Part shown: positions 19,926-48,017 of the stretch, piece after piece
How the letters are laid out: each line of letters starts with the position of its first letter
How positions within the stretch are numbered: position 1 is the stretch's first letter
Source: Monocercomonoides exilis PA203
Lineage: Eukaryota > Protista > Preaxostyla
Length of the DNA stretch: 64,000 bases
NCBI GenBank assembly: GCA_001643675.2
Contig: LSRY02000017.1
Coordinates: 992,001 to 1,056,000 of the forward strand
Direction: 5' to 3'
The notes under the pieces: generated by a model
What the model was told of the DNA's origin: nothing
Databases searched by the model: none
Seen by the model: only the letters and a program-made list of their open reading frames with translations
Made by a program: the position numbers and the translations under genes

Positions 19926-20628
19926 GAACTTTTTCGATGGAAATATTATCCCTTTCGTTTTCATATTTGTATTCATTTTTTTAAGAAAATGAAACAATTG
20001 TCTTCAAAAAGTTTCCACTTCGTCTTCTGTGAATCTCTTCATCTATTTCTCCAATGCCTTAGCTTTTCTTCCAACATTGTCCATCGCTCTTTCTCTTTGT
20101 TCTTCCCAATGCTTGTCTCAATCTTCAACTTCTTCTTTCTTTCCTTCTACTATTGCTCCTTTTCCTTTTTCAGTTTTGGAACTTTCATTCTTCATCTCTG
20201 CTCTTTATTTACTTTCGTTCTCTCATCTCTTTGATCATCTCCTTCTTTTTCCTTTTTTCTCCTTCCTCTCTCTTTTCTTCTGATCTGCAATTGATTTGAC
20301 TTGCCTCTTCTTCTTCGTTTGCTCCAAGCTCTATCTTTCTCTTGCTTTCTTTGTTTCTTCCTCCTCTTCTTTAACTTCTCACTCCTCTTCCAATGACTCA
20401 ATTCCGTCTTCTTCTCATCCGCTAACCACATTTTTCCTGCATTTCTTTCTCTTTATTCTTTGATGTGAAAAATTCTGTTTTTGTTGCATCTCATCAGCCA
20501 GACACTTTCTCTTTTCCAAATAAATTAGCAAAGCCTGTTAAAAGAAGGTCTTTATTCTTCATCATCTGTTCTTTTTCCATCTTATATATTCAATCCTTCT
20601 CTGATTTTCCTCATCTCATCCGAACATA

Positions 20629-21593: not shown

Positions 21594-22575
21594 TATTTCC
21601 CTTCCTCCAAGGCACCCTACCTTTCATTTTCACGCAGTTTTTCTTTTCAATAGCCTGAATAAATCAAAAGACAAGTCAATAGCAATAAAGAAATGATAAA
21701 AAACTTTCAGCATTATTTTTTGTTTGAAACCATTTCAATACTTATCATATTGATAATGTTAATTTTCTCTTAAATAACATCTTTATTTCAATGCTTTTCA
21801 TTGATTCCTTCGTTTTTAAATAGATTCTCCAGCAAATTTTCAAACTATCTCTTTAACCTGCCTTTTTTTCATTCATCTATTTCCGAGTTATCGGAAAAAA
21901 AGTGGATTCCTAATCTCCTTTTCAATTCCTCCAGCTAAGTACAAACATTGGATTATTCACCAAATGTTAGCCAAATTCTACGCCCTTCAAATTCTTCGTT
22001 CTATATATCTTCTAACAGGAATTCGCTGATTTCTGAGTGCAGGTTATTTGATCCTTCAACGTCTTGTTCATCAAGGCGAATTGAAAACTTGTAATTTATA
22101 TTTTCCATTCAGTTTGTGAAATTATGATGGACTTGAATAAGATAATTAGAATAGAATAAATATGAGGCTGAAAGATTGGGGGTTTGGAAAAGCAATGCAA
22201 TGTATGCAAACATCTTAAAAGATATTTCAAAGATTTTGAACATTGACAAAGACGGTATATTCTTGAAAACGAAAGGAAAAAATAAATAAACATATTTATT
22301 CAGTTTGTTAAAAGCGCAATAAAAGGTAAAAACATTCTGCTGTTCAACGAAAAATTTTTAATTCACAATTCAATCCAAAAAAAATCATTTGAGCAATTAT
22401 CTCCAATCAAATCAGGACAAACTGAAAGTAATCATCTTCATCTAACAATATTACTCAAAAAAATTAATATTATTATTTTAAAGCATCATTCAACTTTTCC
22501 CCAATAAAATAAATTTGTTAAATTTTTTTTTTCATATGAAAAGAAATAAAAAAAATTAAAAATCTCAAAAAATTT

Positions 22576-22648
22576 CCTCGATGCCGGGAATCGAACCCGG
22601 GTCTCAGGAGTGAAAATCCTAAATCCTAACCGACTAGACTACATCGAG
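22576..22648 (-). tRNA. tRNA-Glu (TTC)
   Basis: Minus-strand cloverleaf: acceptor CTCGATG/CATCGAG, anticodon arm TAGGA-TT TTC AC-TCCTG, T arm CCGGG TTCGATT CCCGG; T-run downstream. Confidence 0.95.
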
Positions 22649-22660
22649 CTGATATGCAGT

Positions 22661-23655
22661 AGACCTTAAATGAATTGAGCGGGTCAATTCGAATTGACAA
22701 AGTCAAAACGTTTTTCGTTTGTCTTATTGGTTTTGACTCAATCAATTCGGTTTTCCCTCAATCTTATTTGTGATCAAAAATACAAAAATTATATATCAAT
22801 TTTGATCATAACTATTTGATGTTTTTTCTATTTTCGGTTTGAAAACAGCTTGTTTTCAGTTATTTTTAAATATGTGAATCTTTAATATATTATTAATATA
22901 TTTGCGTTAGGTTTTTTTTGGATCATAAATAATATGTCAATAGTTTTGTTTCTGACGTTTTTATTTGTTGATCGTTTGGAAAATGGCTTTTAATATTCAA
23001 ACATTAGTTTTTTAGTATTTTGAAAGGTGGAAATGTTTGTTATTTCCTTTCTTTTATTTCAGTTTTATTTTGAGAACATGTTTTTGATTTGACAATTGTT
23101 TTCATGAAGCCTTTTTTGAATAACAAACAACTTAAGTGATATTTATTCTTTTTTTCATTTGAAATGTTTGTTTAAAGCTATGTCAGAGTTATTAGAAACT
23201 TTTTTGTTGTAACTATCGTTTTTTTCTTTTCTTTTCAATAATGTTTATTATTTTTGATTCTTTAATGATCATTAAATTTTTTTTCGCTTCATAACTATTT
23301 ATTATTAACAAAAAAATGAAAAGAACAGAATAACTTTACGAAATAATGTTTTTTTCAAATAATAATTGAAATATGAAGAATTTTGAAAAAGTCAAAACAT
23401 TGAAACTTTCGTATTTTTTAAAGGAAATAATTTTTATAATAATTCTTATATTATATTATTCATGTATTGATGAAAAATTGACAAAAACATAACTCTTTAT
23501 TTTATTGATTTTCATGTGATCATACACCCAGAATTGAATCAATCTGTCTTGACTCAATCAAAACGGTTTTGAGTCAAACTTTTTGGTTTTATGAACCACT
23601 AATTGGTATTTGATTAAGCTAACGGGTATTGATTAAGTAATTTCGTTTAAGTTCT
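22661..23655 (+). mobile_element. PHIS-type MITE (~990 bp), array unit 1
   Basis: Starts AGACCTTAAATGAATTG and ends TTCGTTTAAGTTCT; AGT on both sides; subterminal TTGACTCAATC repeats. Confidence 0.85.
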
Positions 23656-23885
23656 AGTAGAACTAAAACGAAATGACTCAGTAATGTGGTATTCGATTTG
23701 ACTAATACCAATAAGTTACATAAAAAATCAAAAAGTGAGACTTAAAACCGTTTTGATTGAGTCAAGACCGATTGATTCAATTCTGGGTGTGAGATCAATA
23801 GAAAGTTTCAAAAATTAAGTTGTTCATATCTTTCAATATTTAAAGAATAAATGAATTATATTTCACATATATTATAATGTGAATG

Positions 23886-26800
23886 TAGACCTGTGCGACA
23901 CGACAAGCGAATTTTTGTTGCTGTCGGTCACCAAAAAAAAAAAACATTTTTTTGTCACAAAATCGCTTTTGTCGCATGAAACAATTCAATTAAATTTAAT
24001 TTCAAATATTTCTTTTTTTTATATCATTGATCGTTCAATCCATTATAACATAAACAGATTCATAAAACATTATTTTACAACTAATGAGTTGTGAATCATT
24101 TTATCTTTTTATAAGAAGTGCTAACACAAATGTTGTCATGAGCAATTTTTGATTCGACTTTTCTTTAATTCATTAAATTCAAGCATGTTCAAATACAACA
24201 TTTATGAAGAAATTATATCGTTTCCTGAATGAAATCAATGATGAAAATGCGAAAGATATATTTCAAATAAAAATTCAAAGGTTTGGATCCATTATTGCTA
24301 TTGAATTCATGGTTATTGCATTTCTTTCCTTGTTTTTTATTCGGAATTGAATCTTGAGCTTGAGTATTGCACTGAGGATGAACAGAAACAAAAGATCGAA
24401 AAAATAAATGAAATTGTTGATGGAATGAATAAGGAAGAATTCATATCCATTTTCAAGGCAGAATCGTATGATAAAATAAACAAAATGATTGAAAAAAAGG
24501 AAATGTGTTTGGAAAATGCGTTTGTATTGCTGAAGCACATGAAATACTGCAATTTCATTAAAAATATATGGATTTGTTGCTTGAGAAAGTCTTTGTTGAA
24601 AAAAAGAATAAAAGAGATGATCAGAATTGAAGGAAAGAAGGGAAAGAATGGGAAAAATGAAAAGCTTCCTGTTGGCATCAGCGAATGCTGTGTTTTTCTG
24701 AATGTAAGAATTTCGTTGGAATCGATTTCCGTCTGTGTGCGCTGTCTGCTGAAAGTTGGATCGAAGAAAGAGGAAAACGAGGAGATTCAAAAGGAAGTGG
24801 AAATGGCATTGTAGGTATTGAGCAACATTGGATGTCACGTTTGAGTACTTCTTTTTCATTTTTGATATTTCTTATTTTTCGATTTGATTGTTTTTATATG
24901 ATTCTGATTGGGAAATCAAAAAAGAGCTGTATTTAAATTAGATAACAGAAATCATCAGGAGTATCACAATCTGACGTAACTTGCTTATCAGTTCGCTTGG
25001 TTGTTTTTTTTTTATCAGGAGATTATACAATAACAGCAGCTTTGTGGGAGTGATTGTAAATGAGCTGCATTTTCTGCGTGAGGGAGAAAGAGAGTTGGAA
25101 GAGTCGGTGAAGTGTGTGGATTGGAAGAGAGAGAAGGAAGCGGAGAAAGAGGGAAAAGAGACAAAAGAAGAGCTTGCTTTGATGAGATGGCTTTAGGCAT
25201 TCTCGATTTATTTTGGCGGGTGCCAATTGCAGAATGAAGAATTTGTTTTGATTATAAGTGGAATTCCTGTATAGTTCGAGCAGCTAAGAATAATCGCAGC
25301 GGAATTAGTAACTGGTGCACTTATCCAATGATAAAATCAGCAGAGAGAAGAGTTGTGAAAGTTGATAAGCTGTTGAAGGGAGGAGCTGTTGATGATGTTT
25401 TGGAGGGGATGCAGCAGCCAACGTTTATTGACGGAATGACATTTAATGGATTGAAGTTTTTTTTGAAAATTTCAAGTGGATTGAAAGAAGAGGAGAAAGA
25501 CAAAACGAAGGAAGAGAAAAGAAAAGTGACAAAAATGAAGTTTTTTGAAAAGATGGCAGAAGAAGGATGCGAAGATATCGTAGCTTGCATCCGAGAATTG
25601 ATTCGATTTTTTAACGAAGAAAATAATATTGATGATTTGTCATTGAAATTTTCTAATTATTATGTGAATGTTTGACCAGATTCATTTCATTTTATTTTTT
25701 GCCTCAAAAATGTCATCTTACTTGTTCATTTCACAAAATTGAAAACATGCGCTTGATGGTTTGAGAATGTTTTTTTATTTTTAATAATTTCTTTAAAAAA
25801 TGAAGTGAAACCTAATTACATTAATATATAGAGAAAATTGCATTGAAGATTATTCCACACAATTCTTTTCTTTTTCAGAAAACATCTACAAGAAATTTGT
25901 AACTTCAACGTTTTGGGGGAAAAAATAATGAATTCCATCCTTCATTTTTCTTTCATAACTTCCAGCTGCCTTTCATCTTCTCCTTTAAAAAATTTCATTC
26001 TTTTCTACTGGTTTTTCTCACTTCTTTTCAATTGGAATTATTTCTTTAAATCTTTCCATTTATTTTCATAGAATCTGTTTATTTTCACATTGCATATGAA
26101 TGGAGAGTGCAAAGAAAGAAAAATTACATCGAGGATGATTAGCTATGTGAATAAAATATCAAGCAAACATGAATCGTGTTGCATTCGTGAAGAATTCTGA
26201 GAAGTTGAATGAATGTTCTGTTTTAATATCAATTTTCCAGCAATCAAAAAAAATATATATATAATAAAATCAGCATTCTCCTTGCGAGTATTGATTGATC
26301 ATTATTTCATTAATTTCTTAGAATGACACACATTTTTATGATTAAAATTCAGCACTTTCTGTTCAACTAATAGAATAAACTCTGCCCACTTGTTACATAT
26401 GAGTGAATTTGTTCGATTTCTTTGTTCAAGGGCTGCACACACTTTTATCTTCATCACTAGTTCAAATGCTCCATTAAGTCATTGATAATGCTTTTTTCTT
26501 CCATTTTAAAAAATGAGAATTTCATCCTTTATTTCGAAAAAGATCCGGAACGAACATTCAAAAACTTTGAAAGACATGTTTTCATAATAAAATAAGATAT
26601 GCATTTTCAAGGATAAAATCACATCACATGAAGAAAATTGAAAAATGAGTCAAACAAACAAAAATTAATGAAATAATGAAATTTACAAATATATCCATCT
26701 TCAAACGATCATTAATTTAAAAAGTCTTACAATGAGCATTCTTCAGATATTTTTTGAATATGTATTTGCTTTTTGCTTTTAAAAAGAAGGACTACAAGAT

Positions 26801-27383
26801 ATCAAACGAAAAGTTATGGTTGAAAGAGATGGAAAAATGAAATCTCAAACATTTCATATGCTCGACAAGTTATTTTGTTACTCTGTTTCTATTTAGTACG
26901 TGTTTATTTCATTAACAAAATGTAATGTCAGTGACAGAAGTGACTTCCAGTGACATAAAAAATCCATGTTTCACAGATCTTGTCAGTGAAAAATATATTT
27001 TGGAAAATTTGATATATAGAATTTTCAAAAATATTGCAAAAAATATTTAATATTTCTTTATCAAATATTTTTGATCATGCTCGACAAAGACAAAAAATTC
27101 TATTGATTTCTTTTCTTCTCTTACAGTTTTCTTTCTTTCTTTCATTTTGTTGAAACAAATATTTCCTGCCATGTTCCAACAAAATAAGAAAATTTTGTTG
27201 GAACATGAAACATTCTGTTAATTATTTGAATGAAAAAATATTAAAATATTTTATTTTTCTGTTCGAAAAAACACTCCCAAAAAAGAAAATATAAAAAAAA
27301 TAATGGTTGTGATCGGTAATAATTGTCCTGTCGGTCACCTGTGTCGGTTACTGACAAATTTTGCCACTTGTCGCACAGGTCTA
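23886..27383. mobile_element. Non-autonomous hAT-like element with cargo
   Basis: Perfect 15-bp TIR TAGACCTGTGCGACA; perfect 8-bp TSD TGTGAATG (23878-23885 and 27384-27391); subterminal TGTCGGTCACC at both ends. Confidence 0.9.
24330..25675 (+). pseudogene. Decayed member of an expanded helical hypothetical-protein family, inside the hAT-like element
   Basis: ORF pieces ELEYCTEDEQKQKIE.., KKEENEEIQKEVEMAL*, LKGGAVDDVLE..EEGCED, broken by stops and frameshifts. Confidence 0.7.
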
Positions 27384-28161
27384 TGTGAATGTTTTTTATT
27401 AAAAAAACGAAAGATTCTATGTTTTGATTTTTTCATAATTCTTTATTCAATTTTCTATCTGTCAAAATAGAATGAATTCAAAAAATAAAAAGTGTATATC
27501 ATTCTTTTGATTATTATTTATTGATTTGAAGTGTTCAAATATAATGATCAAAATAGACCAAGGTTATAAAAAATTGAATTAAAAAGAAAAGAAAAACACA
27601 GATTCAAATGACTTAAACAACAAAATTATTCATTGAAAACACATCTATTCAAATAATTACATAAAAATGAATAAAATCGTTAAATTTCACACATTGTTCA
27701 TAAAAAAATGAACAAACTTTATTTTTCTGAGGAAAACATCCATCAAAAACAGAAATTAACTTAAATCATTGGGTTTCTCAACTATTTCAAAATCAGCGGC
27801 TATTACAATGAATGCGAATAAGTAAAAAATGTGTAATTTCAATGGAAAAAACCAAAATATCAATCACCAAATTTATCGACATTTTGTTCGTGATCATCAA
27901 TAAATATCATTCATACACAAAAACAACAATGAAATAAAAAGCATATCAAAAAATTACTATAGACAAACTGCTCTGTTTCAGAAAACATAAAAAACTTCTA
28001 AGAATTTCGATCAAAATAGATACATATTTTTTGATTTTTTGATCACAAATAAGATTGAGGGAAAACCGAATTGATTGAGTCAAAACCAATAAAACAAACC
28101 AAAAACGTTTTGATTTGATCAATTCATATTGACCCGCTCAATTCGTTAAATCTCAACTCCA

Positions 28162-29829
28162 TAGTCGGGGAGGAAACCCGATCCAGGGAGGAAACCCGAC
28201 CCAATGATCTGAAAAACATTTATGAAAAATTGATGAAAATTAAAGTTTTTTTCTCTGAAAAAAACATGTTCAATATATGAAAAATGCACTGTTTCCAGTA
28301 AAAAAAACCTGAATAAAATAATAAACACGATTTTCTTAAACAGAAATTCAAATAACTGGATAATTAACAGAAATTGAGAAAAAGCAATAATTTAAGCAAA
28401 AAGTTGATGACCGTCGTCAGATGAATAATAGACTGCTCCATATGAAGCACCTTCTGGTGCTCTTTTAGGATTTATTTGTGAGGCAGCCCATTGAGGAGGG
28501 GCATCAGGTAAGCGATTCAAAACTTCATTTTTTTCTATTGGAAATAAACCACAAATCCTCCACGAAGCAATTATCGTTGAGGGGTAACTAGCAGCTGATA
28601 GTCCATTTTTTAAAGTTCGAATGAATGCTTCTCTTCTCTCCGCAGCCGTCGTAGCCTTCCCGCTTTCCGTTGCCTTGCTGAAATTCCTCTTTAAACTCGT
28701 AAACACAAATTGGTCGTTGGGCTGAAGAATATGAGAGGTGTGAGATGGAAGTTTTATCAAATCTATTAAACTGTCTCTGCAAACTTTTTTCATTTCATCG
28801 CTGAAATGGCCCACACCTCCATCCATGACCAGCATAGCATGATCATATTGCTTTCCAATGGCGCACCGTTTTTTGTTTATTTCTGGCAAAAATATTTTTT
28901 TAAACAATTCAGCGAATAATGATGATGTTAAATGGCCTGACGTGGTTGGGATAAAAACTTCAGTTGAGGTTGTGGCAAGAAGATATTCTGCTGGAATTGT
29001 TTTGAAGGGAATGAGAATTGGTGCAAGGTATCTGCACCCATCGGCGCTTGTCATTAAAATGATTGATGTGGATGTTGGCAGAGACGATTCTGGAGTGATT
29101 GATGAAGGAACAGAAGAAGATGAAGCGACCTGTTCTTCTGATAAAGCTGAAAAAACTGTTGATGTTTCATCAATATTGAACATCAATTGAGGTATTGGTT
29201 TCACCTTGAAGCAATATTTTTCGTAGGCGTCGAAAAACGGAATTAATACTGCTTTACATGAATGTGCAGCCCTTCCAATGGGTAGCGGTTTCGGCTTTTG
29301 CAAGTTGATTTTTTTATGTCTTAACAAAAAACGATCAACCCAATGCTTATCCACAGTCTTGATTTCTTCTCCTTCGCTTCTTTTTTTGCACAGTAATTCA
29401 TTTGCCTGAAATACAAAAAAAGTTAAAAAAATGATGAAAACACATATTTTCACACCATTTGCATAATATTTCGTTTCGTGTGATAAATTCCGATCCTTAT
29501 GTCCTCCAAAATCCTCTATTCTAACTCATCTTCTTTTGCTTTTGTTAACAATGTTGGTCTACCATTTTTTCTTAAATCTCTCCCTTCTTTTCTTGCTGTC
29601 AAGGCTCTCACCAAACATCCTCTCGAAATTAACCCGCTTTCCTTTATTTCACGACCGGAGTATTGCAAAATATCATAGGCATACAAGGCCTTGACAAATT
29701 CATCTCCAATTGAACGCATATCACTCGATGCTTTAATTCTGACAAGAGAAGGTTTCTTTTCCATTGTTTTGATCAAAAACATTAATCAAAATTTTTGATC
29801 AAAAATGGATCGGGTTTCCTCCCCGACTA
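28162..29829 (-). mobile_element. pogo/Fot-like DNA transposon, family 2
   Basis: 24-bp TIR TAGTCGGGGAGGAAACCCGATCCA at both ends; internal transposase. Confidence 0.9.
28392..29782 (-). pseudogene. DDE_1-type transposase (DD35D); intron 29406-29455; one in-frame TAG at 29516
   Basis: GRPTLLT, WVDRFL, NIDET, MDGG...LPSHTSHILQPND. Confidence 0.85.
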
Positions 29830-32198
29830 TAACTTATGCGATTTGAACTGGTCATATATTATTTGCCTTTGCTAAAGCAGATAAGTTAAATATAATGCAA
29901 ATTAGATCGAGACAAATCGATTTGATTGAGTCAAAGCAAATTACTATAATTGTGGGTGCGAATATGATCGATAATAATTGTTATTAATGGGTGTTTTTGT
30001 ATTTAACTTTTTTGAAACTTCATCATTCATGTCTCAATCTCCATTTTTCGATATTTTGAAGAGCGTGGAGAAAAGAAATGTGATGCCATCTCATGTCGAG
30101 ATTAAATCTGATGATGATCAGCAATCAATCATCGATAAATTTTGTAAAAAATTTTCTGACCCATCTTTCGGTTTTCACCGACTGACTGGGTTTGTTCGTT
30201 ATGAATTCGACTTGCTTCTTCGTCTTCCCTCATCATCAGCCCAACCTCATCGTGGAAGGGCAAAATCAATCGAATCTTTGGATGAACAACTTTTTCTTTT
30301 GTTAGTTTTTCTTCACCACGGCTCCATTTCTTTAACTCACGTCATATCTCAATCAAAACACGAATCTCAAACATCAACTGTTCGACTTCTTCATTCAACA
30401 GCATCAAATTTAAAACCTCAACTTGCAAATCTTTTTCTTTCATTTCGTCCAGATCGATTAGAGCAAATAAAGGAGGTGGGAATTGTGCTTGACTGCACAG
30501 TAATACCTACAAACAGGCCTGGAGGGAGGTTGGAGTTTGGAAAAAAATACTACTCAGGGAAGCATCACATCTATTGTGTCAAGGCGGAGGTGGGAGTGAA
30601 CCCCAAGGTGGGGACAGCAAGTACAATCAGTTCTATCTACTCTGGGTCAACTCGCGATTTCATTATTTTCAAAGAACATCACCCCACATTTGTTCAAAAG
30701 CTTGGAGGAGCAAAGATTTTGGCCGATTCCGCTTACACAGGAGCGAAACCAGAGCTTGGGGCGATTATTACAAAGCCCGTTGGAACTCCTGAGCTTGCAT
30801 CTCATCGTGTTATTGTTGAAAGATTTCTTGGAAGGCTCAAAACTCTCTTTTCTGTCTTCCGTCATCCGTGGGTTTTTGAAATGGAGCGTGTTGGGGACTA
30901 TTTTTCAGTGGCTTGCTGCCTCACAAACTTTCATATCTTGCACAATCCACTCACAAATAAGGATTTTGAAGCAAATTCATTGTTTTTGGAGGAGTTATAT
31001 TCGAATTACTTGAGAAAAGTTGATGCAAAGAAGGTGGCTAATGCTCGATATTTCGCCAAAATGAAAAATAAACTCAATCCAGAAAATACACTGACACCCA
31101 CAATAACTACAATTTTGGCAGAAATTGGAAGCTTATCTTTTACTTTTTTACCATTATTTTTTATTTTTTATTACAATTTTTTCATTTTTATAAACATCAT
31201 TTTACCATATTTTTTTTATTTTAGATGCTTCTGATGATGATCAAAGGGCGTACGAAGCAGAAAAAGCTAAAGAAAGAAGAGAAAGAGCGAATAGCGAAGT
31301 TTTAGTACAAAGAAGCGAGCAAAGGGAACAGGTTTTGGAAAAAGAAAGAAATGATTTTGATGAAAATCAAAATTGTGATAATTCACAAGCTTGGCACCTT
31401 CCGCAGCAATTGAAGTCGATAAGTATTTTTTCTCCATCTTCAACTCAACCTTTTCCTTCATTTTCACAATCACAACCTTCTTCTTCCTTTTCATCATCAT
31501 CTTCATCAACTGCTTCTTCTTCCTCTTCTGTTGGTTCAAAACAAAATAAACCCCCATCTGTTCTTCAATCGTTGCTGAATAAAAAGTGATTATCATTTAA
31601 TTTTTCTTTAACTTCTTTAAGCAACCATCTCATCTTTTCAATAATCTTAAATAATTAATATTTCCAATTCTAATTTTTTTTTTTGAATAAAAAACAAAAA
31701 TTGTGTTCATCAATAAAATTTCTATATATTTTTTAATTTTCTATACAAAATATAGTAATAAAAATGAAATGAAACAAAAAACCAACAATAACAAAAAAGT
31801 TAACGAAATTGGATCGAAAGAGCTTTTTGTTTTTCTGAAATACAGATATATATTAAATTTCAACTGTGATCATCTCTTGCTCGTGTTTAAAACGTAAGTT
31901 TCAAATTGTTCATTATGATCCGAATCGGAAGAAGAGATGTTGATAATAAACAATAAACACTTAAAACAATCAAAAAAAGAATTCACAAACTTGTTGTATT
32001 TTAAAAATCTGCTGACAAGGAAGAGAGTTTGAAAAAATGAGTCAATATCTTGATCGTAATTGACTCATAATTGTTTTCAAAAAAGATCAAAAAAAGATCT
32101 ATTCAAATCAGATTTGATTAAGTCAATTCAAATAAGATTGACTAAATGCAAATTGATTGAGTCAAATCAAAATTATGCACTCAATTCGAAAAAGTTCA
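29830..32198 (+). mobile_element. PHIS-type element with transposase, array unit 3
   Basis: Right end AATTCGAAAAAGTTCA followed by ACT; left end damaged by the pogo insertion; subterminal GATTGAGTCAA motifs. Confidence 0.8.
30029..31589 (+). CDS. DDE_Tnp_4 (Harbinger/ISL2EU/IS5-like) transposase, apparently intact; predicted intron 31131-31224
   Basis: F.RLTG, LDCT, YSGKHH, LADSAY, RVIVERF.GRLK, CCLTNF motifs. Confidence 0.85.
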
Positions 32199-32201
32199 AC
32201 T

Positions 32202-34540
32202 AGAACTTAATTAATTTGACTGCGTCAAGTGGCATTAGATCGGTCAACATCCAATAAGATCGATCTAATGCCATTAAGACGCAGTCAAATTGGATGTGAC
32301 TCAGTCACATCCGATGTTTTCAATTCTGGGTGTCATGATCACTTTAAAAAAAAAATCTTTAAAGGGTCATTTCACTTGCTTGTTTCTATTTTTTTCACAA
32401 AATGTAACAATCAACTTTTTTAGACATTTTAGAGAGAGTGGAAAAGAGAAATGCTATCACTGCACCAGTGCACATCACTCCTTCAACTGCAAAAAAATCC
32501 CTTATCGAATCTGCTTGCAAATATATGAAAATTGATAAAACTCATGCATTTTTCCGACTCACTGGATTTGCTCGTTTTGAATTTGATTTGCTTTATCAGT
32601 TATTAAGCAAAGAAATCCCTCTTCATCGAGGTAAAGAAAAAACAATTGAAAAATTTGAGGATCAACTTTTTCTTCTTTTGAATTTTTTACATCTTGGATC
32701 AACATCCTTCACTCATTTTCTCGTTTCTTCTTTTTATGAAACACAAAATTCAACAATTAAACTACTTCACAGCATTGTTCAAAATATAAAAGTCAATCTG
32801 ATAGATTTGTTTATCACATTTCGACCAGATAGATTGGATGATATGAGAGATGTGGGTGTTGTGGTTGACTGCACAGTTCTTCCAATCAACAGGCCTGCTG
32901 GAAGCTTACAGTTTGGAACAAAATTCTTCAGCGGGAAGCATCATATTTACTGCGTGAAGGCTGAAGTTGGTGTTTACCCGCGCACCGGAACAGCCAGCAC
33001 TGTCAGTTCTATTCATACCGGTTCAACACATGACTTTTCCATCTTCAAGGAGCATTTCCCACAATTTAAGGCGCAGCTTGGGGGCTCAAAGGTGCTTGCG
33101 GACTCGGCATACATCGGGGCGAGGGCTGATTTGGATGCATATATTACGAAACCTGTCGGAACTCCTCAGCTGGCATCGCGGCGAGTCATAGTCGAGCGTT
33201 ATTTTGGTCGTTTGAAGACTCTCTTCGCTGTCTTTCGCCACAATTGGCCATTTCAGGTCGAAAAGATTGCTGACTACTTCATTGTTACATGCGCACTGAC
33301 AAACTTCCACATCCTTCACAACCCATTAACTGGACTTGACTGCGAAGCCAATCAGAGGTTCATCAATGAACGATACCTAATTACAACAAGAAAAACAGAA
33401 GCAAGGAGACTTGTCAACGATAGATATCGGGCTAAACTTAAAAATAGACTCAACCCAGAGGCCTCTCCAACTTCTAGAATTACAGTTCTGCTTGCAGAAG
33501 AAGCTGGCGTGAATTTTTATTTTTTACCCATATTATTCTTTATAACGTTTTATTTCTTCTTTTTCTTATTTCAATAACCATAACTATCTTTTTTAGGTGA
33601 TTCTGATGACCAACAAACCCAAAATAGTGAAAAAGAAGAGAAAGAAGAAGAGAAAGAAGAAAAGGAAAAGAAAAAGAAAATTTCTATTGAAGAAAAAGAA
33701 AAAAGGAATGAAATTATTATGTTGAATAGTGAAAATGATGAAATAGAAGATGAAAGAAATAATGTTGTTGGCACATGGTTCATTCCGAACCAATGGAAAA
33801 GTCTTCGCCTTCTTCAACAATCTTCTTCTTCAACTTTTCCTTCTTCTTCATGTTCATCATCTGATGAGAAAAGAAAAAGAGTAAGTGAATCGCCTTTACA
33901 ATTTCTTTTAGCAAATAAAAAATGAGTTTTTTCTTATTTTTTTATATAAACATTCACCTTCATCACCTTTTTTTATAATCATAATACACTTTTGATGTTT
34001 TAGATAATATTTGTTTTTGTTATTATTAAACATACATAAAAATATAAAAAAATTTGATTGAAAATTGTTTTTAACTCTTTAAAGCTTAAAATAAAAAATG
34101 AAAATATGAAATAAATGAAAATGAACATTTTAACAAACACGTATATGCAAATATTAAAAAATACATTCAAATAAGCTATAACTGTTGTTTTTTTTGTTTA
34201 AAAGTTGGTAATCCTTACAAAAAATGCGTATAAACTTGATATAAATACATAGTATGAAAAATAGATAAAAGTGTAAAAACTGATCAAAAATGGCTTTTAT
34301 AATATCTAATAAACACACAAACCAAATTCTAAAACACAACTAAAAACATTGGTGAAGAAATAAACAAAACAAAAAAAGTTAAGATCACAACACTCAAAAC
34401 AAATTTAATTGATAATTCCGACTCTGAAAACATGTGAGATAGAGGGAAATTCGATTAAAAATAGATAAATTCGATAAACCAGACAAAAATCGATTTGACT
34501 GAATCACATTTTCGCGACTCAGTCAAATCAATCAAGTTCT
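32202..34540 (+). mobile_element. PHIS-type element with transposase, array unit 4
   Basis: TIRs AGAACTTAATTAATTTGACTGCGTC and GACTCAGTCAAATCAATCAAGTTCT; ACT on both sides. Confidence 0.9.
32402..33925 (+). pseudogene. DDE_Tnp_4 transposase with a stop at codon 2; predicted intron 33507-33596
   Basis: ATG TAA CAA TCA ACT TTT TTA GAC ATT aligns to MSQSPFFDI of unit 3. The rest is open, with VDCT, FSGKHH, HD, LADSAY and IVERYF motifs. Confidence 0.8.
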
Positions 34541-34543
34541 ACT

Positions 34544-35536
34544 AGACCTTAAACGAATTGAGCGGCTCAATTCGAATTGATTAAGTCAAAACGTTTTTTT
34601 GTCTATTTTAATGATTTTGACTCAATCAATTCGGTTTTCCCTCAATCTATTTTGTGATCATAAAATCAAAAATTATATATCAAGTTTGATCATAATTATG
34701 AGTAGTTTTTTCTGTTTTCTGTTACAGAGTGGTTTGTTTTTAACTGTTTTTTGAAATGTTAACTTATTAATTGTCATTTTAATGATTATTAGTTCTTTTT
34801 TGTTGCAAAATGATAAGAAGTCCTAAAAGAGCAAAGAACATTTTTTTGCAAATAAGATTGATATGAATTGATATTTGCTTTTGCATTTGCATTGATTTAT
34901 TTGTTTGCTCAAAAACAATCTATTCTATATTTATTTATTCATTCATTTTTTTGTTAAATTGTTTCAATTTTTAAAAGTTTTCATTTAAACCATGAAACTT
35001 AATGATCGATGTTTTTTGCGACTTTCATTTGAAGCAATTCAAACAGACATTGCTTTAAAGCTATTTTTTTATTTTTATTAAAAAACTTTTGTAATTGAAG
35101 TCAAAATTTTAAATTTTTCAAAAAATATTTTTATCTTTTTTCACACTTAAGATCTTTATGTTTAACAAGAAAAAGCATCAAAAATATACTTGTAAGAGTT
35201 AGAAATTAGAGTTTTGCTTGTTTTAATCGAAAAAACTGATTCAAAATTCAAATGTGAAAATCCAAAAAAATTCAGAAAAAAAGAAATTTCGACTTTTTCG
35301 ATGAAATATATATTATTATTAAATGAAATTAAAATTTTTATATATAAAATGATTTCAAAAATGAAAAAAACAAGTTAACAAAAGCTGTAATTTTGATTGA
35401 TCATGCACCCAGAATTGAATCAATCGGTCTTGACTCAATCAAAACGGTTTTGAGACTAACTTTTAGGTTTTATGAACCACTTATTGGTCTTAGACGGAGC
35501 TAACGGGTATTGATTAGGTAATTTCGTTTAAAATCT
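34544..35536 (+). mobile_element. PHIS-type MITE, array unit 5
   Basis: AGACCTTAAACGAATTG start, TTCGTTTAAAATCT end, ACT flanks; homologous to 22661-23655. Confidence 0.88.
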
Positions 35537-35539
35537 ACT

Positions 35540-36528
35540 AGAACTAAAACGAAATTATTAAGTAATGCGGTATTCGATTTGACTAATACCAATAAGTTAC
35601 ATAAAAAATCAAAAAGTGAGACTCAAAACCGTTTTGATTGAGTCAAAACCGATTGAATCAATTCTGGGTGTGAGATCAATCAAAATCACAGTTTTTGATT
35701 ATTTGTTTTTTTCATTTTTAAAAATTATTATATTTATAAATATTTCATTTTCATTCAATTGTTGAACACATTTCTTGAAAAAGTCAATATTTCTTAATTT
35801 CAACTTTTTTGGATTTTTATATCAAAATATTGTATCAATTTTTGAGATTTAAACAAATAAAACTCTTATTATTCACTTTTATATGTAAATTTAGGATGCT
35901 TTAAACATATTAAACATAACGATCTTAAGTGTGAAAAAAGATAAAAATATTTCTTGATAAATTAAAATTTTGACTTCAATTAGAAAAATTTATCAATTAA
36001 AATAAAAAAATAGCTTAAAAGAAATGTCTGTTTGAATTGCTTCAAATGAAAGACGCAAAAAACATCGATCATTAAGTTTCATGGTTTAAATGAAAACTTT
36101 TAAAAATTGAAACAATTTAACTGAAAAATGAATGGAAAAAAAATACAGCATTGAATTTTTTTTATCAAGCCGATAGCATAATGTGAATTCAGAAGTTAAC
36201 ATCTTATAATATCATTCGTATTTGCAGAAAAATGAACTTTGTTCGTGACGGACTTATTTTCATTATGCAACAAAAAAGAACCAATAAACAAATAAAAGAC
36301 AATAAATAAGTGAACGTTTCAAAAAACAGTTTAAAACAAACCACTCTGTAACAGAAAACAGAAAAAACTACTCATAATTATGATCAAACTTGATATATAA
36401 TTTTTGATTTTTTGATCACAAAAAAGATTGAGGGAAAACCGAATTGATTGAGTCAAAACCATTAAAATTGACTGAAAACGTTTTGACTTAATCAATTCGA
36501 ATTGACCCGCTCAATTCGTCTAAGGTCC
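35540..36528 (-). mobile_element. PHIS-type MITE, array unit 6 (inverted relative to unit 5)
   Basis: AGAACTAAAACGAAAT start, CAATTCGTCTAAGGTCC end, ACT flanks. Confidence 0.88.
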
Positions 36529-36731
36529 ACTAGACCTTTGACGATTTAATATAATCAATTTTCATAAGTCGATTCTTTTTCACAAAAGTTTTTCATAATA
36601 CGAATTAGATTTAGAAAATACAGTATTGAATTTCTCACAACCATTGAAATAAATGTTGGGAAAATGATCCTTCAAAAAAAACCTCAATTAATGGGATATA
36701 TTGTTAATAACGCTTTTGAAAAGTGAACATC

Positions 36732-38348
36732 ATGTCCCAAATCAACATTGAAAGCATTCTTGAAAGTGTCGAAAAACGTAATGTTTTACCGAAAGCTCTG
36801 CAAATCAAAACAGAAAAAGTTCAACGTTCTATCATTGAAATAGCTTGTGAAAAACTTGAAGATCCATCTCGCTCATTTTTTCGATTGTCAGGGTTTTCAA
36901 GAAATGAATTCGATCTATTGTTATTACTACTGCAAAAAGAATCTCCTTACCACCGTGGAAGAGACAGAGCAATTAACACTTTGGAGGAGCATTTGTTTTT
37001 GCTTCTGAATTTTTTGCATCATGGTTCACCAACACTAACCTTTTCGCTTGCTTCCCCTTTCTACGATTCTCAGAGTGCGACAAACAGATTGTTACATTCA
37101 ATAACATCTTCTCTCAAACACCAATTGGCAGATTTATTTCTAACATTTCGCAAAGACAGGTTGGATGAAATGAAGGATGTTGGAATTGTACTAGATTGCA
37201 CAGTGATTCCTATTTGCAGACCAGGATGAAAACTGAAGGAAGGAAAGAAGTTCTATAGTGGAAAGCATCATTACTATTGCGTTAAAGTGGAAGTTGGAGT
37301 AAATCCAAGGAAGGGCACTGTGAGCACTATAACCGAGGTTTACACAGGTTCAACACACGATTACAGCGTGTATAAAGAGCACTGTCCAAAGTTCTAGGAC
37401 AAAATGGAAGGATCGAAAATACTCGCAGATTCAGCTTATGTGGGTGCAAGACCAGAGCTGGGGGCCATCATTAGCAAACCAGTTGGGACAAAGGAAATTT
37501 CATCAAAAAGGGTTATTGTTGAACGTTTTTTCGGAAGACTTAAGACATTATTCTCTGTCTTTCGTCATCCTTGGCCTTTCGATGTTGAAAAAATCGGAGA
37601 GTACTTTTTCGTTGCTTGTTGTCTCACTAATTATCACATTCTTCAAAACCCTCTCACTAAAAAAGACGAAGAAGCAAATCAACGATTTTTGGACAGTTTG
37701 GTTTACGATTATTTACAGAAAAAAGAAGCAAAACGGATTGCAAATGAAAGATACAACACGAAAATCAAAAATAAATTGAATCCTGGAAATATGCCAGCAC
37801 CCAGAATTTCTTCTCTAGGAGCCCAAAGAGAAGGTTTACTAATTGAAATATTAACCATAACTTTGTTTTTTATGCAAATAAAACATTTTTTGAACATTCA
37901 CATTAACCATATTTTTTTTTGTTAATTGATAGGGCAAACACAGAATTTAGTCGCCATTGATCATGCCATAAGCAGAGGAGAAGAAGAAAGAGAACAACTT
38001 GAGAGCCAAAGAGAAGAAGAAAGGGTTTGTCGATTGGAAAGAGAAAGAGAAAGAGAAATTCCAGATGCACAATCAAGTGATCACTCATTTGATTGGTTTC
38101 TCCCTGGGCAATGGAAATCAACAAACATTTTCTTGCCGTCTTCTTCTGCTCCTTTTCCAGTTTTTCCTGCTTCCTCTTCATCTTTATCATCAGCTTCTGC
38201 ATCTTCATCTTCATCTTCATCTTCATCTTCATCTTCATCTTCATCTTCATCTTCATCTTCATCTTCATCTTCATCTTCATCTTCAGCTACTCAAAATACG
38301 CAAATTCTGAGTCCGCTACAATTATTATTAAACCAGCGAAATGATTAA
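36732..38348 (+). pseudogene. DDE_Tnp_4 transposase pseudogene; intron 37834-37932
   Basis: Same motifs as units 3 and 4; in-frame TGA at 37227 and TAG at 37395. Confidence 0.85.
38200..38285 (+). repeat. (TCATCT)n repeat encoding poly-Ser in transposase exon 2
   Basis: About 14 hexamer units. Confidence 0.9.
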
Positions 38349-38959
38349 TTGATATATAAATACAATATATTAAAAATTTTTCACTTCAATATCAATAATA
38401 ATAAAAACACTTGGTTTTGTTCAAATTGTTTTATTTTTTAAAATGAACACTTAATTTAAACAAAGAACAAAAAAAATTATTATGAAAAATTTCTTTCAAC
38501 AGCTTTGTTGATTAGAAACTTTATCTCATAAAAATAATTACTCCAATTTGAAATGATAAAAGTTATAAATATAAAAAAAGGAATTGTCATAAAAATATAT
38601 TTCATTCACATTATTTTTTTAAATCGATCATGTTTGTTTAGACGAGAAACTTCTAAAACTGTACTTGTAGTAATCATCTGAACTTTAACGAATTTCAATA
38701 ATCAGTTCAAAATGAAATGAAACATACTTAATAACACTTATTCAAACTTATTGTTCGATTCATGTGAAAGTTACTATTAATAACAGCAAGAACAAAACTC
38801 TAAAAAAACGATCAAATCATTTCCATAATATGCTTATTTGAGATCAAAAAAAAGATAGATCAAATACCGAATTGAGTTCGTCAACACTAAATAGAAAAAC
38901 AGAAAACAAATTGATTGAATCAAAACGAAATTACCCGATAAATTCGTCAAAGGTCTACT

Positions 38960-39665
38960 AGACCTTAAACGAATTGAGCGGGTCAATTCGAATTGATTAA
39001 GTCAAAACGTTTTATGTCTTTTTTAATGGTTTTGACTCAACCAATTCGGTTTTCCCTCAATCTTATTTGTGATCAAAAAATCAAAAAATATGTATCTATT
39101 TTGATCGAAATTCTTAGAAGTTTTTTATGTTTTCTGAAACAGAGCAGTTTGTCTATAGTAATTTTTTGATATGCTTTTTATTTCATTGTTGTTTTTGTGT
39201 ATGAATGATATTTATTGATGATCACGAACAAAATGTCGATAAATTTGGTGATTGATATTTTGGTTTTTTCCATTGAAATTACACATTTTTTACTTATTCG
39301 CATTCATTGTAATAGCCGCTGATTTTGAAATAGTTGAGAAACCCAATGATTTAAGTTAATTTCTGTTTTTGATGGATGTTTTCCTCAGAAAAATAAAGTT
39401 TGTTCATTTTTTTATGAACAATGTGTGAAATTTAACGATTTTATTCATTTTTATGTAATTATTTGAATAGATGTGTTTTCAATGAATAATTTTGTTGTTT
39501 AAGTCATTTGAATCTGTGTTTTTCTTTTCTTTTTAATTCAATTTTTTATAACCTTGGTCTATTTTGATCATTATATTTGAACACTTCAAATCAATAAATA
39601 ATAATCAAAAGAATGATATACACTTTTTATTTTTTGTATTCATTCTATTTTGACAGATAGAAAAT
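38960..39665 (+). mobile_element. PHIS-type MITE, array unit 8 (truncated)
   Basis: AGACCTTAAACGAATTG start; near-identical inverted match to ~27450-28146; cut off by the fold-back element. Confidence 0.85.
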
Positions 39666-41402
39666 GGCATAGGTTCAAACGCGTTCCTTTTGCAATTTGC
39701 GTTTTTAAACCATCAAATTATAACGAATTAATAGATAATAATTATTTAAAAACTTTTTATGGACCGATTTTTCGAAAAAAATTTTTCTTGTTGAAAAAAA
39801 TGACTTTTGAAAAATGACCCATAAAAACAAGAATTTCAATAAAATTTATTCAAATTTAAAAGAAAACGTGATTTTTACACATCCAATGTGCTTTTTTAAT
39901 AATATAAATTTATTTTATTAATTAATTTTCATCAAAAAATATAAATCATAAATAAAAAATTTAATTAAATATCTTTGATCTAACCCACAATAAAAATTTT
40001 AATATCTGGAAAATTTGAATATGCTGTTTTAGTTAAAATAGAACCTAAAAGTATGTAATTCGTTCACTTTTATATGTTAATATAAGTATATTATTATATG
40101 CTAACTTGTATAATATTGAAAACAGATTTTATTCACAGTTTCATTAAGGTGTGCTTTTTGACTTTAATTTTCATTAGCGTGCAGATGTTAATTTCAAAAT
40201 TGGTTGCAATGGAACGCAAAAGGTATTATATGATTCATAATATCAAATAAATATTCATTTTGTTTTTTTCTTTCAAATATTTTCTTTTCCTTTGATATGT
40301 TAATGTATTTTTTTATTAGACTCGATCAAAACATGCATTTATGAATTAATCTTGCAAAAATTAACAATAATCACACAAAATAATTCAATGTTGAATTATA
40401 AAAACAATGAACTTTATAAAAGTTTGTCATTTTTATGTTTCTATTAAAAAAATGAAAAATGAGATTGATTTTGTTTTTCAAGTGGATAGGATGTTGTAAT
40501 ATGTGGAAGTGAAGAAGAACCATGCCAAATGATGTGCAAATGGATGGAAAATATGAAAATGGGAAATGAAAAGAAAATAATTCAGATTGAAAAGCAAAAT
40601 CAATCTCATTTTTCATTTTTTTAATAGAAACATAAAAATGACAAACTTTTATAAAGTTCATTGTTTTTATAATTCAACATTGAATTATTTTGTGTGATTA
40701 TTGTTAATTTTTGCAAGATTAATTCATAAATGCATGTTTTGATCGAGTCTAATAAAAAAATACATTAACATATCAAAGGAAAAGAAAATATTTGAAAGAA
40801 AAAAACAAAATGAATATTTATTTGATATTATGAATCATATAATACCTTTTGCGTTCCATTGCAACCAATTTTGAAATTAACATCTGCACGCTAATGAAAA
40901 TTAAAGTCAAAAAGCACACCTTAATGAAACTGTGAATAAAATCTGTTTTCAATATTATACAAGTTAGCATATAATAATATACTTATATTAACATATAAAA
41001 GTGAACGAATTACATACTTTTAGGTTCTATTTTAACTAAAACAGCATATTCAAATTTTCCAGATATTAAAATTTTTATTGTGGGTTAGATCAAAGATATT
41101 TAATTAAATTTTTTATTTATGATTTATATTTTTTGATGAAAATTAATTAATAAAATAAATTTATATTATTAAAAAAGCACATTGGATGTGTAAAAATCAC
41201 GTTTTCTTTTAAATTTGAATAAATTTTATTGAAATTCTTGTTTTTATGGGTCATTTTTCAAAAGTCATTTTTTTCAACAAGAAAAATTTTTTTCGAAAAA
41301 TCGGTCCATAAAAAGTTTTTAAATAATTATTATCTATTAATTCGTTATAATTTGATGGTTTAAAAACGCAAATTGCAAAAGGAACGCGTTTGAACCTATG
41401 CC
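39666..41402. mobile_element. Fold-back element with ~810 bp inverted arms
   Basis: GGCATAGGTTCAAACGCGTTCC...GGAACGCGTTTGAACCTATGCC; spacer ~40482-40586; no TSD visible. Confidence 0.8.
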
Positions 41403-42090
41403 CACAACCTTCTTCTTCCTTTTCATCATCTTCTTCTTCAACTGCGTCTTCTTTCTCTTCTGTTTCTTCAAAACAAAATACGCTTTCATCTGATTTCCAA
41501 TCATTGTTGAATAAAAAGTGATTATCGTTATATTATTCTTTGTATAATTTCTTCTTCCATCTCATATTTTTGGAAATTGCTCATTATAAGTTTTTTCAAT
41601 TCTGAATTAATTTATTTTGAATAAAGAAACGATAATTGTGTTCACAAATAAAATAACGATACATATGTGTATTTTCTATTCAAAATATACAAATAAAAGC
41701 GAAATGAAAAAAAAAAAAAAAAAAACTTAAAAGTTTTCAAAACTGATTATTAACGTTAACTGCTTTTCTGACATTCAGATATAAATTTAATTTCTTCAAT
41801 TAATCAACTCTCGCTCGTGTCAAATATGTTTGATTTGAATTGTTAATCATGATTCGAATCGGAAGAAGAGATATTGAAAATAAACAACAAAAATATTAAT
41901 CAAAACAACAGTTCACAAATTCGTTTCATTTTTGAGGTGAACCAACAAGGAAGAGAGTGGAAATTTTCTGATTCAATATCTTGATCGAAATTGGTTTATA
42001 ATTGTTTTCGAAAAAGATTAAGATATGATCTATTCTTTTCAGATGTTATAATGTCAAAAAAAAAAAATGCATTCAATTCACAAATGTTCA
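41403..42090 (+). mobile_element. 3' remnant of a PHIS element related to unit 3 (array unit 9)
   Basis: Colinear with 31470-32198 (..QSLLNKK*, CGAATCGGAAGAAGAGAT, end ..GTTCA), followed by ACT at 42091-42093. Confidence 0.75.
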
Positions 42091-42139
42091 ACTTCAATGG
42101 CGGGTGAGTAAATCAGATCAGATCAATTATTATTTTGTC

Positions 42140-46285: not shown

Positions 46286-47940
46286 TAGTCGGGGAGTTAA
46301 CCCGCTCAGAATAATAAAAATTTTGTTAATTGAGATCAAAATAATAATATTGTTCTTAATGTTTCAAAACCTAAAAAATCCAACTTTTTGTATTTGCAAT
46401 GAATCATATCAAACAAAAATTCAAATTCAGATAAAAAAATGTGGAAAAAATACTATCGACAGAGAAAATGTTCATGGAAAACAGTTATTTCAATAAATCA
46501 TTTAAATCATCTGAACTAAAAAAAATATTTCCACTTCTCGTATTTTCCGCATCTCTAACACGTGAGAAAGAAGTTGTAGACCATTCAGGCGGCTTGTCGG
46601 GTATAATTTTCAAAACAACTTCACGATTGAATGGCTGCCATCCTGTAATCTTCCAGCTGGCTTTTATTGTCGATGGGAAAGATGCCATGGCAATTGCTTA
46701 CTTCAGCAACGAAGCAAATTCCTTTCTTCGATCAGCAGCATTAATTACAGCTCCGCATTTCCATCCAGTTCGAAAGCATTTCTTCATATTTGCAAACACG
46801 TACTGATCGTTAGGTTGAAGTATATGTGTGGTGTGAGAAGGCAGTTGGATCATATCTATAAAATTATCTTTGCAAATTCTTAACATTTCAGGGGGAAAAT
46901 GTCCTGTGCCACTGTCCATGATAAGCACAGCGTGATTATGTGGTTTTCCGATGGCTAGACGTTTTTTCAAAATACTAGGAAGAATAGCCTTTGAAAAAAC
47001 GTCGAAGAATGCTGTGGAAGAAAGATGACCATTTTCGCTAGGTATGAATACCTCCATTTCTGTCTTTGCTTCTTTGAATTCTTCTGGAATTTTAGAATAT
47101 GGAACGATGATAGGTGTGAGATATCTGACTCCATCCGAGTTTGTCAGAAAGACGATGCTTGTTTATCTTGGCAATGAAGGTTCAGGCTGAATAGGCGATG
47201 AAGATGTGTGAATAGGAATGACCACAAAAGGATTAATCTCAGAAAACACCGTTGAATTCTCATCCAAATTAAAAATCAGTTGTGGGATGATACAAACCGT
47301 TTTGAAGAATTTTTCAATCATGACAAAAAATGGTTTCACAGTCTGTTTGGATGTTTGCAGCGCCCTGTGAACCGGAAGTTGCTTTGGAGGCTTCTGAATT
47401 AGATCTGGATATCTTGCAAAAAGCCGTTTTGGCCAATGCTTATCAACGCATTTCACTTCATTTTCTTCAGATCTTTTTTCAGCTCTAATTTCATTCGCCT
47501 GTGAATGTCAAAAAAAACAATTAAAAAACTCAACAAAAAAAAAACGAATAATTTTAGCAATTTCTGGTGTGGTGTGATAAATTCCTTTCGACGCATCAAA
47601 TTCTAATCTGGTTATTATACGTAACTCATCAGATTTTGTGAATATTGTTGGTTTTCCAGGCTTTCCAATGTATCGACCTGCGTTTTGAGCTTTTTCAGCT
47701 CTTTTCAATGAATGTCTTGTAATTTTTCCTCCTTCTTCAACAGCTGATTTCGAAAGTCCACAGACTAAGTGCAAGTATAATCCCTTTTCATGTGGATCTG
47801 TCAACGACCTCGCTTCGCTGGATGCAGCCAATCTCAAGACTTGTGTTTTTTGCAACGACATAAACGAAGTGATCTTTATCCCATTTTTTCAACGTTTCAT
47901 GAGCGGGTTAACTCCCCTGAGCGGGTTAACTCCCCGACTA
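46286..47940 (-). mobile_element. pogo/Fot-like DNA transposon, family 3
   Basis: 23-bp TIR TAGTCGGGGAGTTAACCCGCTCA; the motif is duplicated at the right end. Confidence 0.9.
46485..47861 (-). pseudogene. DDE_1-type transposase pseudogene
   Basis: GKPTIFT, NLDEN, MDSG...LPSHTTHILQPND. In-frame TAA at 47163 and 46698; intron near 47499-47550 with an apparently damaged donor. Confidence 0.85.
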
Positions 47941-47945
47941 AAATC

Positions 47946-48017
47946 GCCTCGGTAGCATAGTGGCAGTGCGTATGCCTTGTAAGCATAAGGTCGAGGGTTC
48001 AATTCCCTCTCGGGGCT
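47946..48017 (+). tRNA. tRNA-Thr (TGT)
   Basis: GCCTCGG/TCGGGGC acceptor, TATGC-CT TGT AA-GCATA anticodon arm, GAGGG TTCAATT CCCTC T arm, T-run terminator. Confidence 0.95.

Follow-up and report, generated by a model that had tools for sequence, protein, structure and literature searches.

End-to-end PIF/Harbinger-type transposons beside a tRNA gene of Monocercomonoides exilis: a possible stack of insertions at a tRNA landing site

How do eight DNA transposons come to stand end to end, most of them separated by a single base triplet? This question is raised by a 19-kb chain (22658-42093) of PIF/Harbinger-type units (PHIS; DDE_Tnp_4) in Monocercomonoides exilis PA203. The chain lies in a 64,000-nt stretch, here called the window, which belongs to contig C11 of an 82-Mb, AT-rich assembly of 101 contigs; chain coordinates are positions within this window. 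An earlier interpretation (the sequence-only reading) had counted at least nine elements side by side, and had proposed that the transposase repeatedly re-uses the target-site duplication (TSD) beside a resident element end. The multi-unit chain proved to be real, and it starts 9 bp from a tRNA gene, a position at which PHIS termini recur at independent loci of the genome. We favour, with a rough probability of 0.58, the reading that independent insertions at a tRNA landing site became stacked to give the chain, produced by position-specific integration at the RNA polymerase III (Pol III) start region in the manner of Ty3, with triplet re-use as a by-product. The chain and its flanking features are listed here by window coordinates and strand.

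22576..22648, minus strand: tRNA-Glu(TTC) gene, left anchor of the chain, 5' end towards the chain (ARAGORN; Rfam RF00005)
22658..22660, no strand: AGT, tRNA-proximal duplication copy of U1 (sequence)
22661..23655, plus strand: U1, 995-bp non-autonomous PHIS with AGT/AGT flanks, L-type end towards tRNA-Glu; closest genomic relative 98% identical
23659..28155, minus strand: X2, 4.5-kb non-autonomous PHIS flanked by AGT (left) and ACT (right), pointing right; only its termini are common to the 1-kb units
28164..29827, minus strand: pogo-type element between X2 and T1 (DDE_1, HTH_Tnp_Tc5; TA duplication; Pfam, sequence)
29829..32198, plus strand: T1, PHIS with DDE_Tnp_4 open reading frame (ORF) at 29978-31234, ACT/ACT flanks; closest relative 97% identical
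32202..34540, plus strand: T2, PHIS with intact DDE_Tnp_4 ORF at 32438-33577 and C-terminal motif at 33776, ACT/ACT flanks; closest relative 98% identical
34544..35536, plus strand: U3, 993-bp non-autonomous unit with ACT/ACT flanks, pointing left as an exception in this part of the chain (sequence)
35540..36528, minus strand: U4, 989-bp non-autonomous unit with ACT/ACT flanks, tail to tail with U3 (sequence)
36532..38956, plus strand: T3, PHIS with broken DDE_Tnp_4 ORF at 36723-37229 and 37404-37925 and C-terminal motif at 38094, ACT/ACT flanks; closest relative 92% identical
38960..42090, plus strand: X5, a chimera of three parts
42091..42093, no strand: ACT, right outer flank (sequence)
46288..47938, no strand: second pogo-type element, which ends (with its TA) 5 bp upstream of tRNA-Thr (sequence)
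47946..48017, plus strand: tRNA-Thr(TGT) gene, upstream side towards the chain, possible right anchor for right-pointing elements (ARAGORN, Rfam)

Six joints are clean, with a terminal inverted repeat (TIR), 3 bp, and the next TIR: AGT at 23656, and ACT at 32199, 34541, 35537, 36529, and 38957. At these joints the termini AGAMCTT... and ...AAGKTCT are separated by exactly 3 bp, so that the claimed spacing holds; the outer flanks are AGT at 22658 and ACT at 42091. In the window, the 9-mer TCTANTAGA is over-represented, with 4 occurrences where 0.9 would be expected. A genome-wide search for joints, of the kind suggested before but made with a strict 15-mer joint motif, returned 18 places versus 1 for a reversed control, with an ANT triplet at all 18 joints. 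The supposed degenerate joint at 28156 turned out differently: the X2 end is followed by ACT, CCA, and TA and then by the 1.67-kb pogo-type element, and T1 starts only at 29829. The left ACT of T1 (29826-29828) is composed of the final two pogo bases and the T of the pogo TA. This pogo-type element, which had been thought to have landed in the chain later, probably arrived before T1. X2 had been taken for a miniature inverted-repeat transposable element; it is a 4.5-kb element that has only its ends (about 215 bp and 141 bp) in common with the 1-kb units, and no Pfam domain was matched by its ORFs. As 28156 is no joint and X2 and X5 had to be revised, the number of PHIS units is eight, not nine or more.

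The units differ from one another to an extent that excludes simple tandem duplication, as had been argued: T1, T2, and T3 are mutually about 66% identical, and the units of about 1 kb are 82-88% identical at their ends. Neighbouring units thus represent different subfamilies (66-88% identity), the exception being X2 and X5, which are 98% identical across 707 bp. X5 consists of I) 38960-39671 (712 bp), 98% identical to the inverted 27444-28150 of X2; II) a perfect fold-back at 39666-41402 (1.7 kb); and III) 41403-42090 (688 bp), the 3' portion of a T1-like element with 75% identity to T1. Three fold-back palindromes with arms 99-100% identical lie in or beside the transposon pile (39666-41402, 42133-45860, and 20626-21596), and one of these large fold-backs marks the breakpoint of the chimeric X5. 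Together, the X2/X5 identity, the chimeric X5, and the fold-backs show that rearrangement took place at a later time.

With regard to element class, PF13359 (DDE_Tnp_4) was matched with E-values of 1e-18 to 1e-22 in ORFs of T1, T2, and a further element with its ORF at 60030, and partially in T3; the chain does contain three diverged transposase-bearing units, T1 and T2 (both intact) and T3 (broken). This further element is a fourth, solitary PHIS element (window position 59830 onward; intact transposase ORF 60030-61178) that starts right after an AAT inside an (AAAAT)n microsatellite. As in PIF/Harbinger elements, the transposase is of the DDE_Tnp_4 (IS5-like) type, the TIRs are short, the duplication measures 3 bp, and non-autonomous derivatives are numerous. 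PIF/mPIF and Pong/mPing generate a 3-bp TWA duplication, and PIF has an extended palindromic target, whereas the duplication motif found here is ANT. Units of autonomous size (2.3-2.4 kb) carry a single long ORF and a short downstream exon-like stretch; the second, Myb/SANT-like ORF of PIF/Harbinger elements was not seen, as the other ORFs of at least 90 aa gave no Pfam match (unspliced ORFs only). Downstream of all four PHIS ORFs of the window, in another reading frame, the peptide W[FH][IL]PxQ[WL][KD]S follows a charged stretch (33776, 38094, 61392, and about 31500). The peptide is probably encoded by a spliced C-terminal exon, and it is a candidate for a tether or targeting motif, nothing more; pogo elements do not have it.

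What the single triplets between two termini represent can be read from solitary copies. Of the U family, about 19 independent copies in the genome were inspected, and 13 of the 14 with both flanks readable are bordered by identical 3-bp ANT triplets (AAT, ATT, or AGT). Since solitary copies carry perfect ANT duplications, each single triplet of the chain is one TSD common to two insertions. The joints therefore have the form known from double insertion, with one duplication-length copy per joint that matches the motif of single insertions, and with units that are independent insertions. Of the proposed re-use, the common duplications and the repeated insertion in one target stand; recognition of the resident end, as formulated, is not supported in view of the tRNA anchor and the polarity described below. 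Occasionally, joints of 4-6 bp are found (ACT AAT; ACT ACT; T ATT), and such imperfect joints are easier to reconcile with a positional window than with strict recognition of an end. Joint triplets are A[C/G]T in 15 of 18 cases versus about 40% of all T2-type flanks, single insertions being mostly flanked by AAT or ATT. This excess may arise from the re-use of hotter triplets, as reported for P-element tandems (PMC5932611). A self-regenerating palindromic target, TCT-ANT-AGA, was also considered and was rejected, as the flanks of solitary copies show no such consensus.

The spacer between tRNA-Glu and the first triplet measures 9 bp (22649-22657). For comparison with the rest of the genome, the 60 best-scoring tRNA genes outside the window were taken with 600 bp upstream of each, 54 of which had distinct upstream sequence. 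A transposon terminus was present 5-11 bp upstream in 10 of these 54 genes, always facing the gene, and none was found 12-600 bp upstream in the same 54. The ten termini comprise five of PHIS (T2-type at Gln, Arg, and Thr; T1-type at Glu; T3-type at Lys), three of pogo (always ...CCCCGAC-TA and then 3-7 bp), and two of a third TIR family beginning TAGYGTGT. Among 40 T2-type termini with an ANT flank, seven have a tRNA-like 5' end 2-9 bp further on, as against 0 in the reversed control, and the L end of U copies abuts a tRNA gene or another transposon terminus in 13 of 19. PHIS elements also stand directly upstream of otherwise unoccupied tRNA genes, with no resident PHIS end. Eight tRNA types are in use (Glu, Trp, Asp, Asn, Gln, Arg, Thr, and Lys), and no type is preferred. 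A narrow upstream window at many isoacceptors is thus used as by Ty3; the insertions leave the tRNA genes intact, with the duplications outside the gene. On the downstream side, no transposon terminus occurred within 40 bp of the seven tRNA genes that had downstream sequence.

The upstream region itself offers few targets. Any ANT at -14 to -1 is present in only 11 of 44 unoccupied tRNA genes (25%), versus 85% of background windows; this depletion could reflect promoter constraint (...TTCAACAA motif) or avoidance of the transposon target. The scarcity of ANT targets upstream of tRNA genes explains why a single triplet is re-used: once a first element has inserted, the proximal duplication copy is usually the sole target at a suitable distance.

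The same architecture, with other members and in other orders, is found on at least six contigs. For example, a 9-bp spacer at tRNA-Trp is followed by AGT-[element]-AGT-[U]-AGT-[T2-type], a 9-bp spacer at tRNA-Asp is followed by ATT-[U]-ATT-[element], and AAT occurs twice in a tRNA-Arg stack on contig C37. On C23, two tRNA-Gln genes face each other with 20 kb of PHIS, pogo, and third-family elements between them, and tRNA-Asn on C7 bears a 12-kb stack. In the tRNA-Asn stack, a pogo element is separated from the tRNA by a PHIS element with ACT/ACT flanks, and excision of this PHIS element in silico restores pogo-TA-8 bp-tRNA, which is the usual position of pogo. It follows that PHIS came after pogo at this gene, on the tRNA-proximal side. 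PHIS docking at a pogo terminus was also found in the window (T1) and on C23, C22, and C12.

These stacks are polar. The ends that face the tRNA are, in U elements, the end beginning AGACCTTAAACGAATTGAG and, in T elements, the ORF-distal (R) end. Outside the window, all ten stacked PHIS elements with a known anchor and a scorable end type are directed to the tRNA in this way, and the one T3-type end seen beside a tRNA, that of L041 (tRNA-Lys; recognised by eye), is likewise turned to the gene. Two chains with no known anchor, on C22 and C1, are uniformly polar. In the window, U1 points to tRNA-Glu, and X2, T1, T2, U4, and T3, as well as X5 at its right end, point to the right, i.e., to the tRNA-Thr side.

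PHIS is not the only group found at this position. Pogo-type elements (TIR GTCGGGGAG..., TA duplication) end 5-9 bp upstream of tRNA genes at no fewer than five independent loci, namely, 46288-47938 of the window, L047, L071, L081, and the C7 and C23 stacks (L094/L096 and L091). A second superfamily hence occupies the same tRNA-proximal position. The assignment of these elements to pogo is based on PF03184 (DDE_1) together with PF03221 (Tc5-type helix-turn-helix), and on TA at both ends in the window, on C7, and on C23. The third TIR family (TE3; about 4.4 kb, termini TAGYGTGT...CCCGG) ends 6-8 bp upstream of tRNA genes (L043/L044, L056, L006, and L019; L091 9006 to L092 3432), and a Pfam scan of its ORFs gave no match.

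The favoured reading, a stack built at a tRNA landing site, builds on the observed anatomy, ANT duplications, tRNA-proximal position, polarity, and recurrence at independent loci, and it would work as follows. PHIS would integrate in an ANT triplet 2-9 bp upstream of the mature tRNA 5' end, about where Pol III starts, at many kinds of tRNA gene, and with one particular end towards the gene. Each insertion would duplicate the triplet, and a copy would remain at the same distance from the tRNA. As the short spacer would seldom offer another ANT, the next arrival would take the same triplet and displace the older units outward, leaving one triplet per joint, and the newest element would always be the tRNA-proximal one. 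Within the chain, U1 would be anchored on tRNA-Glu, and most of the other units would be directed to the tRNA-Thr side or would have lost their anchor, with fold-back and pogo insertions and some rearrangement superimposed later. A Pol III factor (TFIIIB or a polymerase subunit) may tether the transposase, possibly via the C-terminal W[FH][IL]PxQ[WL][KD]S. A position-specific attraction to the start region of the tRNA suffices to account for triplet re-use. A wider form of this reading is tentative and rather doubtful: that three unrelated cut-and-paste families (PIF/Harbinger-type, pogo-type, and an unclassified TIR family) would each be tethered to the Pol III start complex like Ty3, PHIS via the peptide, and that the stacks, with the last arrival nearest, would be chronological records of transposition bursts.

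Several observations weigh against the favoured reading. Within the window, U3 and the left part of X5 are exceptions to the polarity, and U1|X2 and U3|U4 are joined tail to tail, an arrangement not predicted by a strictly polar anchor. At X2, the triplet series switches from AGT to ACT. On its right side the chain is not bordered by a tRNA; a second tRNA-Glu was looked for there and not found. The base after the last ACT is T; A would be expected if the ACT series had begun at the pogo terminus. Age proxies along the chain, taken as the identity to the nearest genomic copy, read 98, 98, 97, 98, 87, 92, and 98%, and are uninformative since they are non-monotonic. That joint triplets are enriched for A[C/G]T (15 of 18) suggests that a sequence preference is involved as well. 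The chains on C22 and C1 had no tRNA in the 10 kb examined, and no such insertions were found at the 5S array or at five dispersed 5S rRNA genes, the latter being a sample too small to weigh. As for the sequence that follows the chain, the four bases directly after the last ACT, TCAA, match the spacer between a T1-type element and another tRNA-Glu gene (L084).

Two ways of accommodating the irregular units were tried and rejected. A recombination between X2 and X5 that inverted 28156-38959 was considered for the switch from AGT to ACT; it only moves the mismatch, and it leaves the polarity unfixed. A mobile dimer of the form U(+)-triplet-U(-) was considered as well; however, X2 and U4 are not built alike, each of the two end variants is frequent among monomers, and the genome matches include no further tail-to-tail dimer.

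Next in standing is a mechanism that needs no tRNA, in which the PHIS transposase is drawn to a resident PHIS terminus and inserts in the adjoining duplication, so that a chain may be seeded by any element and may grow at either end. IS30 is reported to target its own inverted repeats. Such attraction is in keeping with the tail-to-tail pairs U1|X2 and U3|U4 and the wrongly oriented units of the window chain, with the C22 and C1 chains that had no tRNA in the 10 kb examined, and with TCT-A[C/G]T-AGA in 15 of 18 joints versus about 40% of T2-type flanks; for the joints at 23656 and 35537, end recognition could be part of the explanation. It leaves unexplained, however, the tRNA-proximal position and the polarity, and also the insertions at tRNA genes or pogo ends that had no PHIS end. 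Furthermore, no neighbour is present at six solitary copies that lie away from tRNA genes, three copies flanked by AGT duplications adjoin pogo or TE3 but no PHIS element, and the flanks of solitary insertions show no TCT...AGA consensus. As an account of the chain, end-directed insertion is considered unlikely.

A further possibility is that insertion is untargeted and that only copies at harmless sites, i.e., upstream of tRNA genes and in or beside transposons, persist, so that piles grow passively. The 25-kb stretch between the two tRNA genes of the window is a transposon graveyard in which fold-back, pogo, and TE3 families are also piled up, and such an accumulation of many other families is what survival in safe havens would produce. 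Selection, however, does not work with single-base precision, and all ten termini lie within 11 bp of the tRNA genes, with none in the next 590 bp; the exact 3-bp joints and the uniform polarity are likewise unexplained, which makes passive survival very improbable as the cause.

Elsewhere in the genome, inverted or tandem duplicates, identical in their flanks, are formed by a tRNA gene together with the transposon upstream of it (L050/L051 on C23, L057/L058 on C37, L084/L085 on C45, and L043/L044), with L005/27 as a further case, and such tRNA-plus-element modules themselves undergo duplication. That segmental duplication, inversion, recombination between copies, or misassembly of repeats built the window chain is the least credible explanation, since these duplicated modules (L050/51, L057/58, L084/85, and L005/27), the 707 bp that X2 and X5 have in common in inverted orientation at 98%, and the chimeric X5 have to be set against units of diverged families (66-88%) with intact termini and matched triplets, against the recurrence of the architecture on at least six contigs, where the members and their order differ, and against contigs from four runs of one sample that hold 30-63% of the sampled words of 31500-37400 (5.9 kb), although this is probably the source sample and hence gives no independent support.

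The targeting of tRNA genes is a textbook safe-haven strategy of retrotransposons in compact genomes. Ty3, for example, integrates 0-20 bp upstream of tRNA genes (PMC7175516). The PHIS elements resemble it in position-specific insertion a few bases upstream of many kinds of tRNA gene, at a site that stays usable afterwards; unlike Ty3, a retrotransposon with an integrase and a 5-bp duplication, they are cut-and-paste elements with a DDE transposase that duplicate 3 bp (ANT), are strongly biased in orientation, and form long stacks of several families. TRE5-A, TRE3, and DGLT-A of Dictyostelium and other tRNA-targeting elements are retrotransposons that insert about 13-50 bp upstream or downstream (PMC6101501, PMC5006619). 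The convergent, orientation-specific use of tRNA genes as landing sites is common to both, but those known elements are all retrotransposons, while the ones described here are DNA transposons; a term search of the comparative survey PMC5006619 found DNA transposons unmentioned.

Tandem dimers with one duplication at the joint, which result from double insertion, are known for the P element, hobo, R1, and bacterial insertion sequences (PMC5932611). The stacks share with them the single TSD per joint and a target motif that is tighter at joints than at single insertions. The known dimers are mostly of one family at sequence-preferred sites, whereas up to eight units of four PHIS subfamilies, with pogo interleaved, are anchored here on tRNA genes. 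Dada elements are DNA transposons with a transposase superfamily of their own; they insert into tRNA or snRNA genes, at a specific sequence within the gene (PMC3706591, PMC8869645). They, too, target multicopy small RNA genes; the insertions found here, in contrast, are upstream and leave the gene intact, and the transposases are of the DDE_Tnp_4 or DDE_1 type, so that the elements do not belong to Dada.

Re-use of a duplication by double insertion is thus already known, and tRNA-upstream targeting was previously known mainly for retrotransposons. In the open-access full-text literature, no report was found of tRNA-upstream targeting by Harbinger, pogo, or other cut-and-paste transposons; the word tRNA is absent from a survey of fungal cut-and-paste elements, and Dada, inside the genes, represents the only DNA transposons tied to small RNA genes in the literature searched. 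If DDE transposases are indeed steered to within a few bases of the Pol III start in a fixed orientation, this would be a new case of convergent evolution. It would also provide a natural model, of relevance for targeted gene delivery, of how a host complex can tether a transposase, and a mechanism for ordered, non-destructive transposon arrays, possible seeds of satellites or centromere-like repeats.

A few minor observations concern other parts of the window and the genome. In the window, two ORFs of 419 aa, at 4718-5977 (plus strand) and 17148-18407 (minus strand), are inverted relative to each other and have identical Pfam DDE_1 scores, and a long gene with an AMPK glycogen-binding domain (8676-13016) sits between them. 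Most 5S rRNA genes are arranged in two long tandem arrays that run in opposite orientations and repeat every 1.3-1.4 kb or so (C15:1360580-1435538), and the few dispersed 5S copies have a TATA-like box at about -28.

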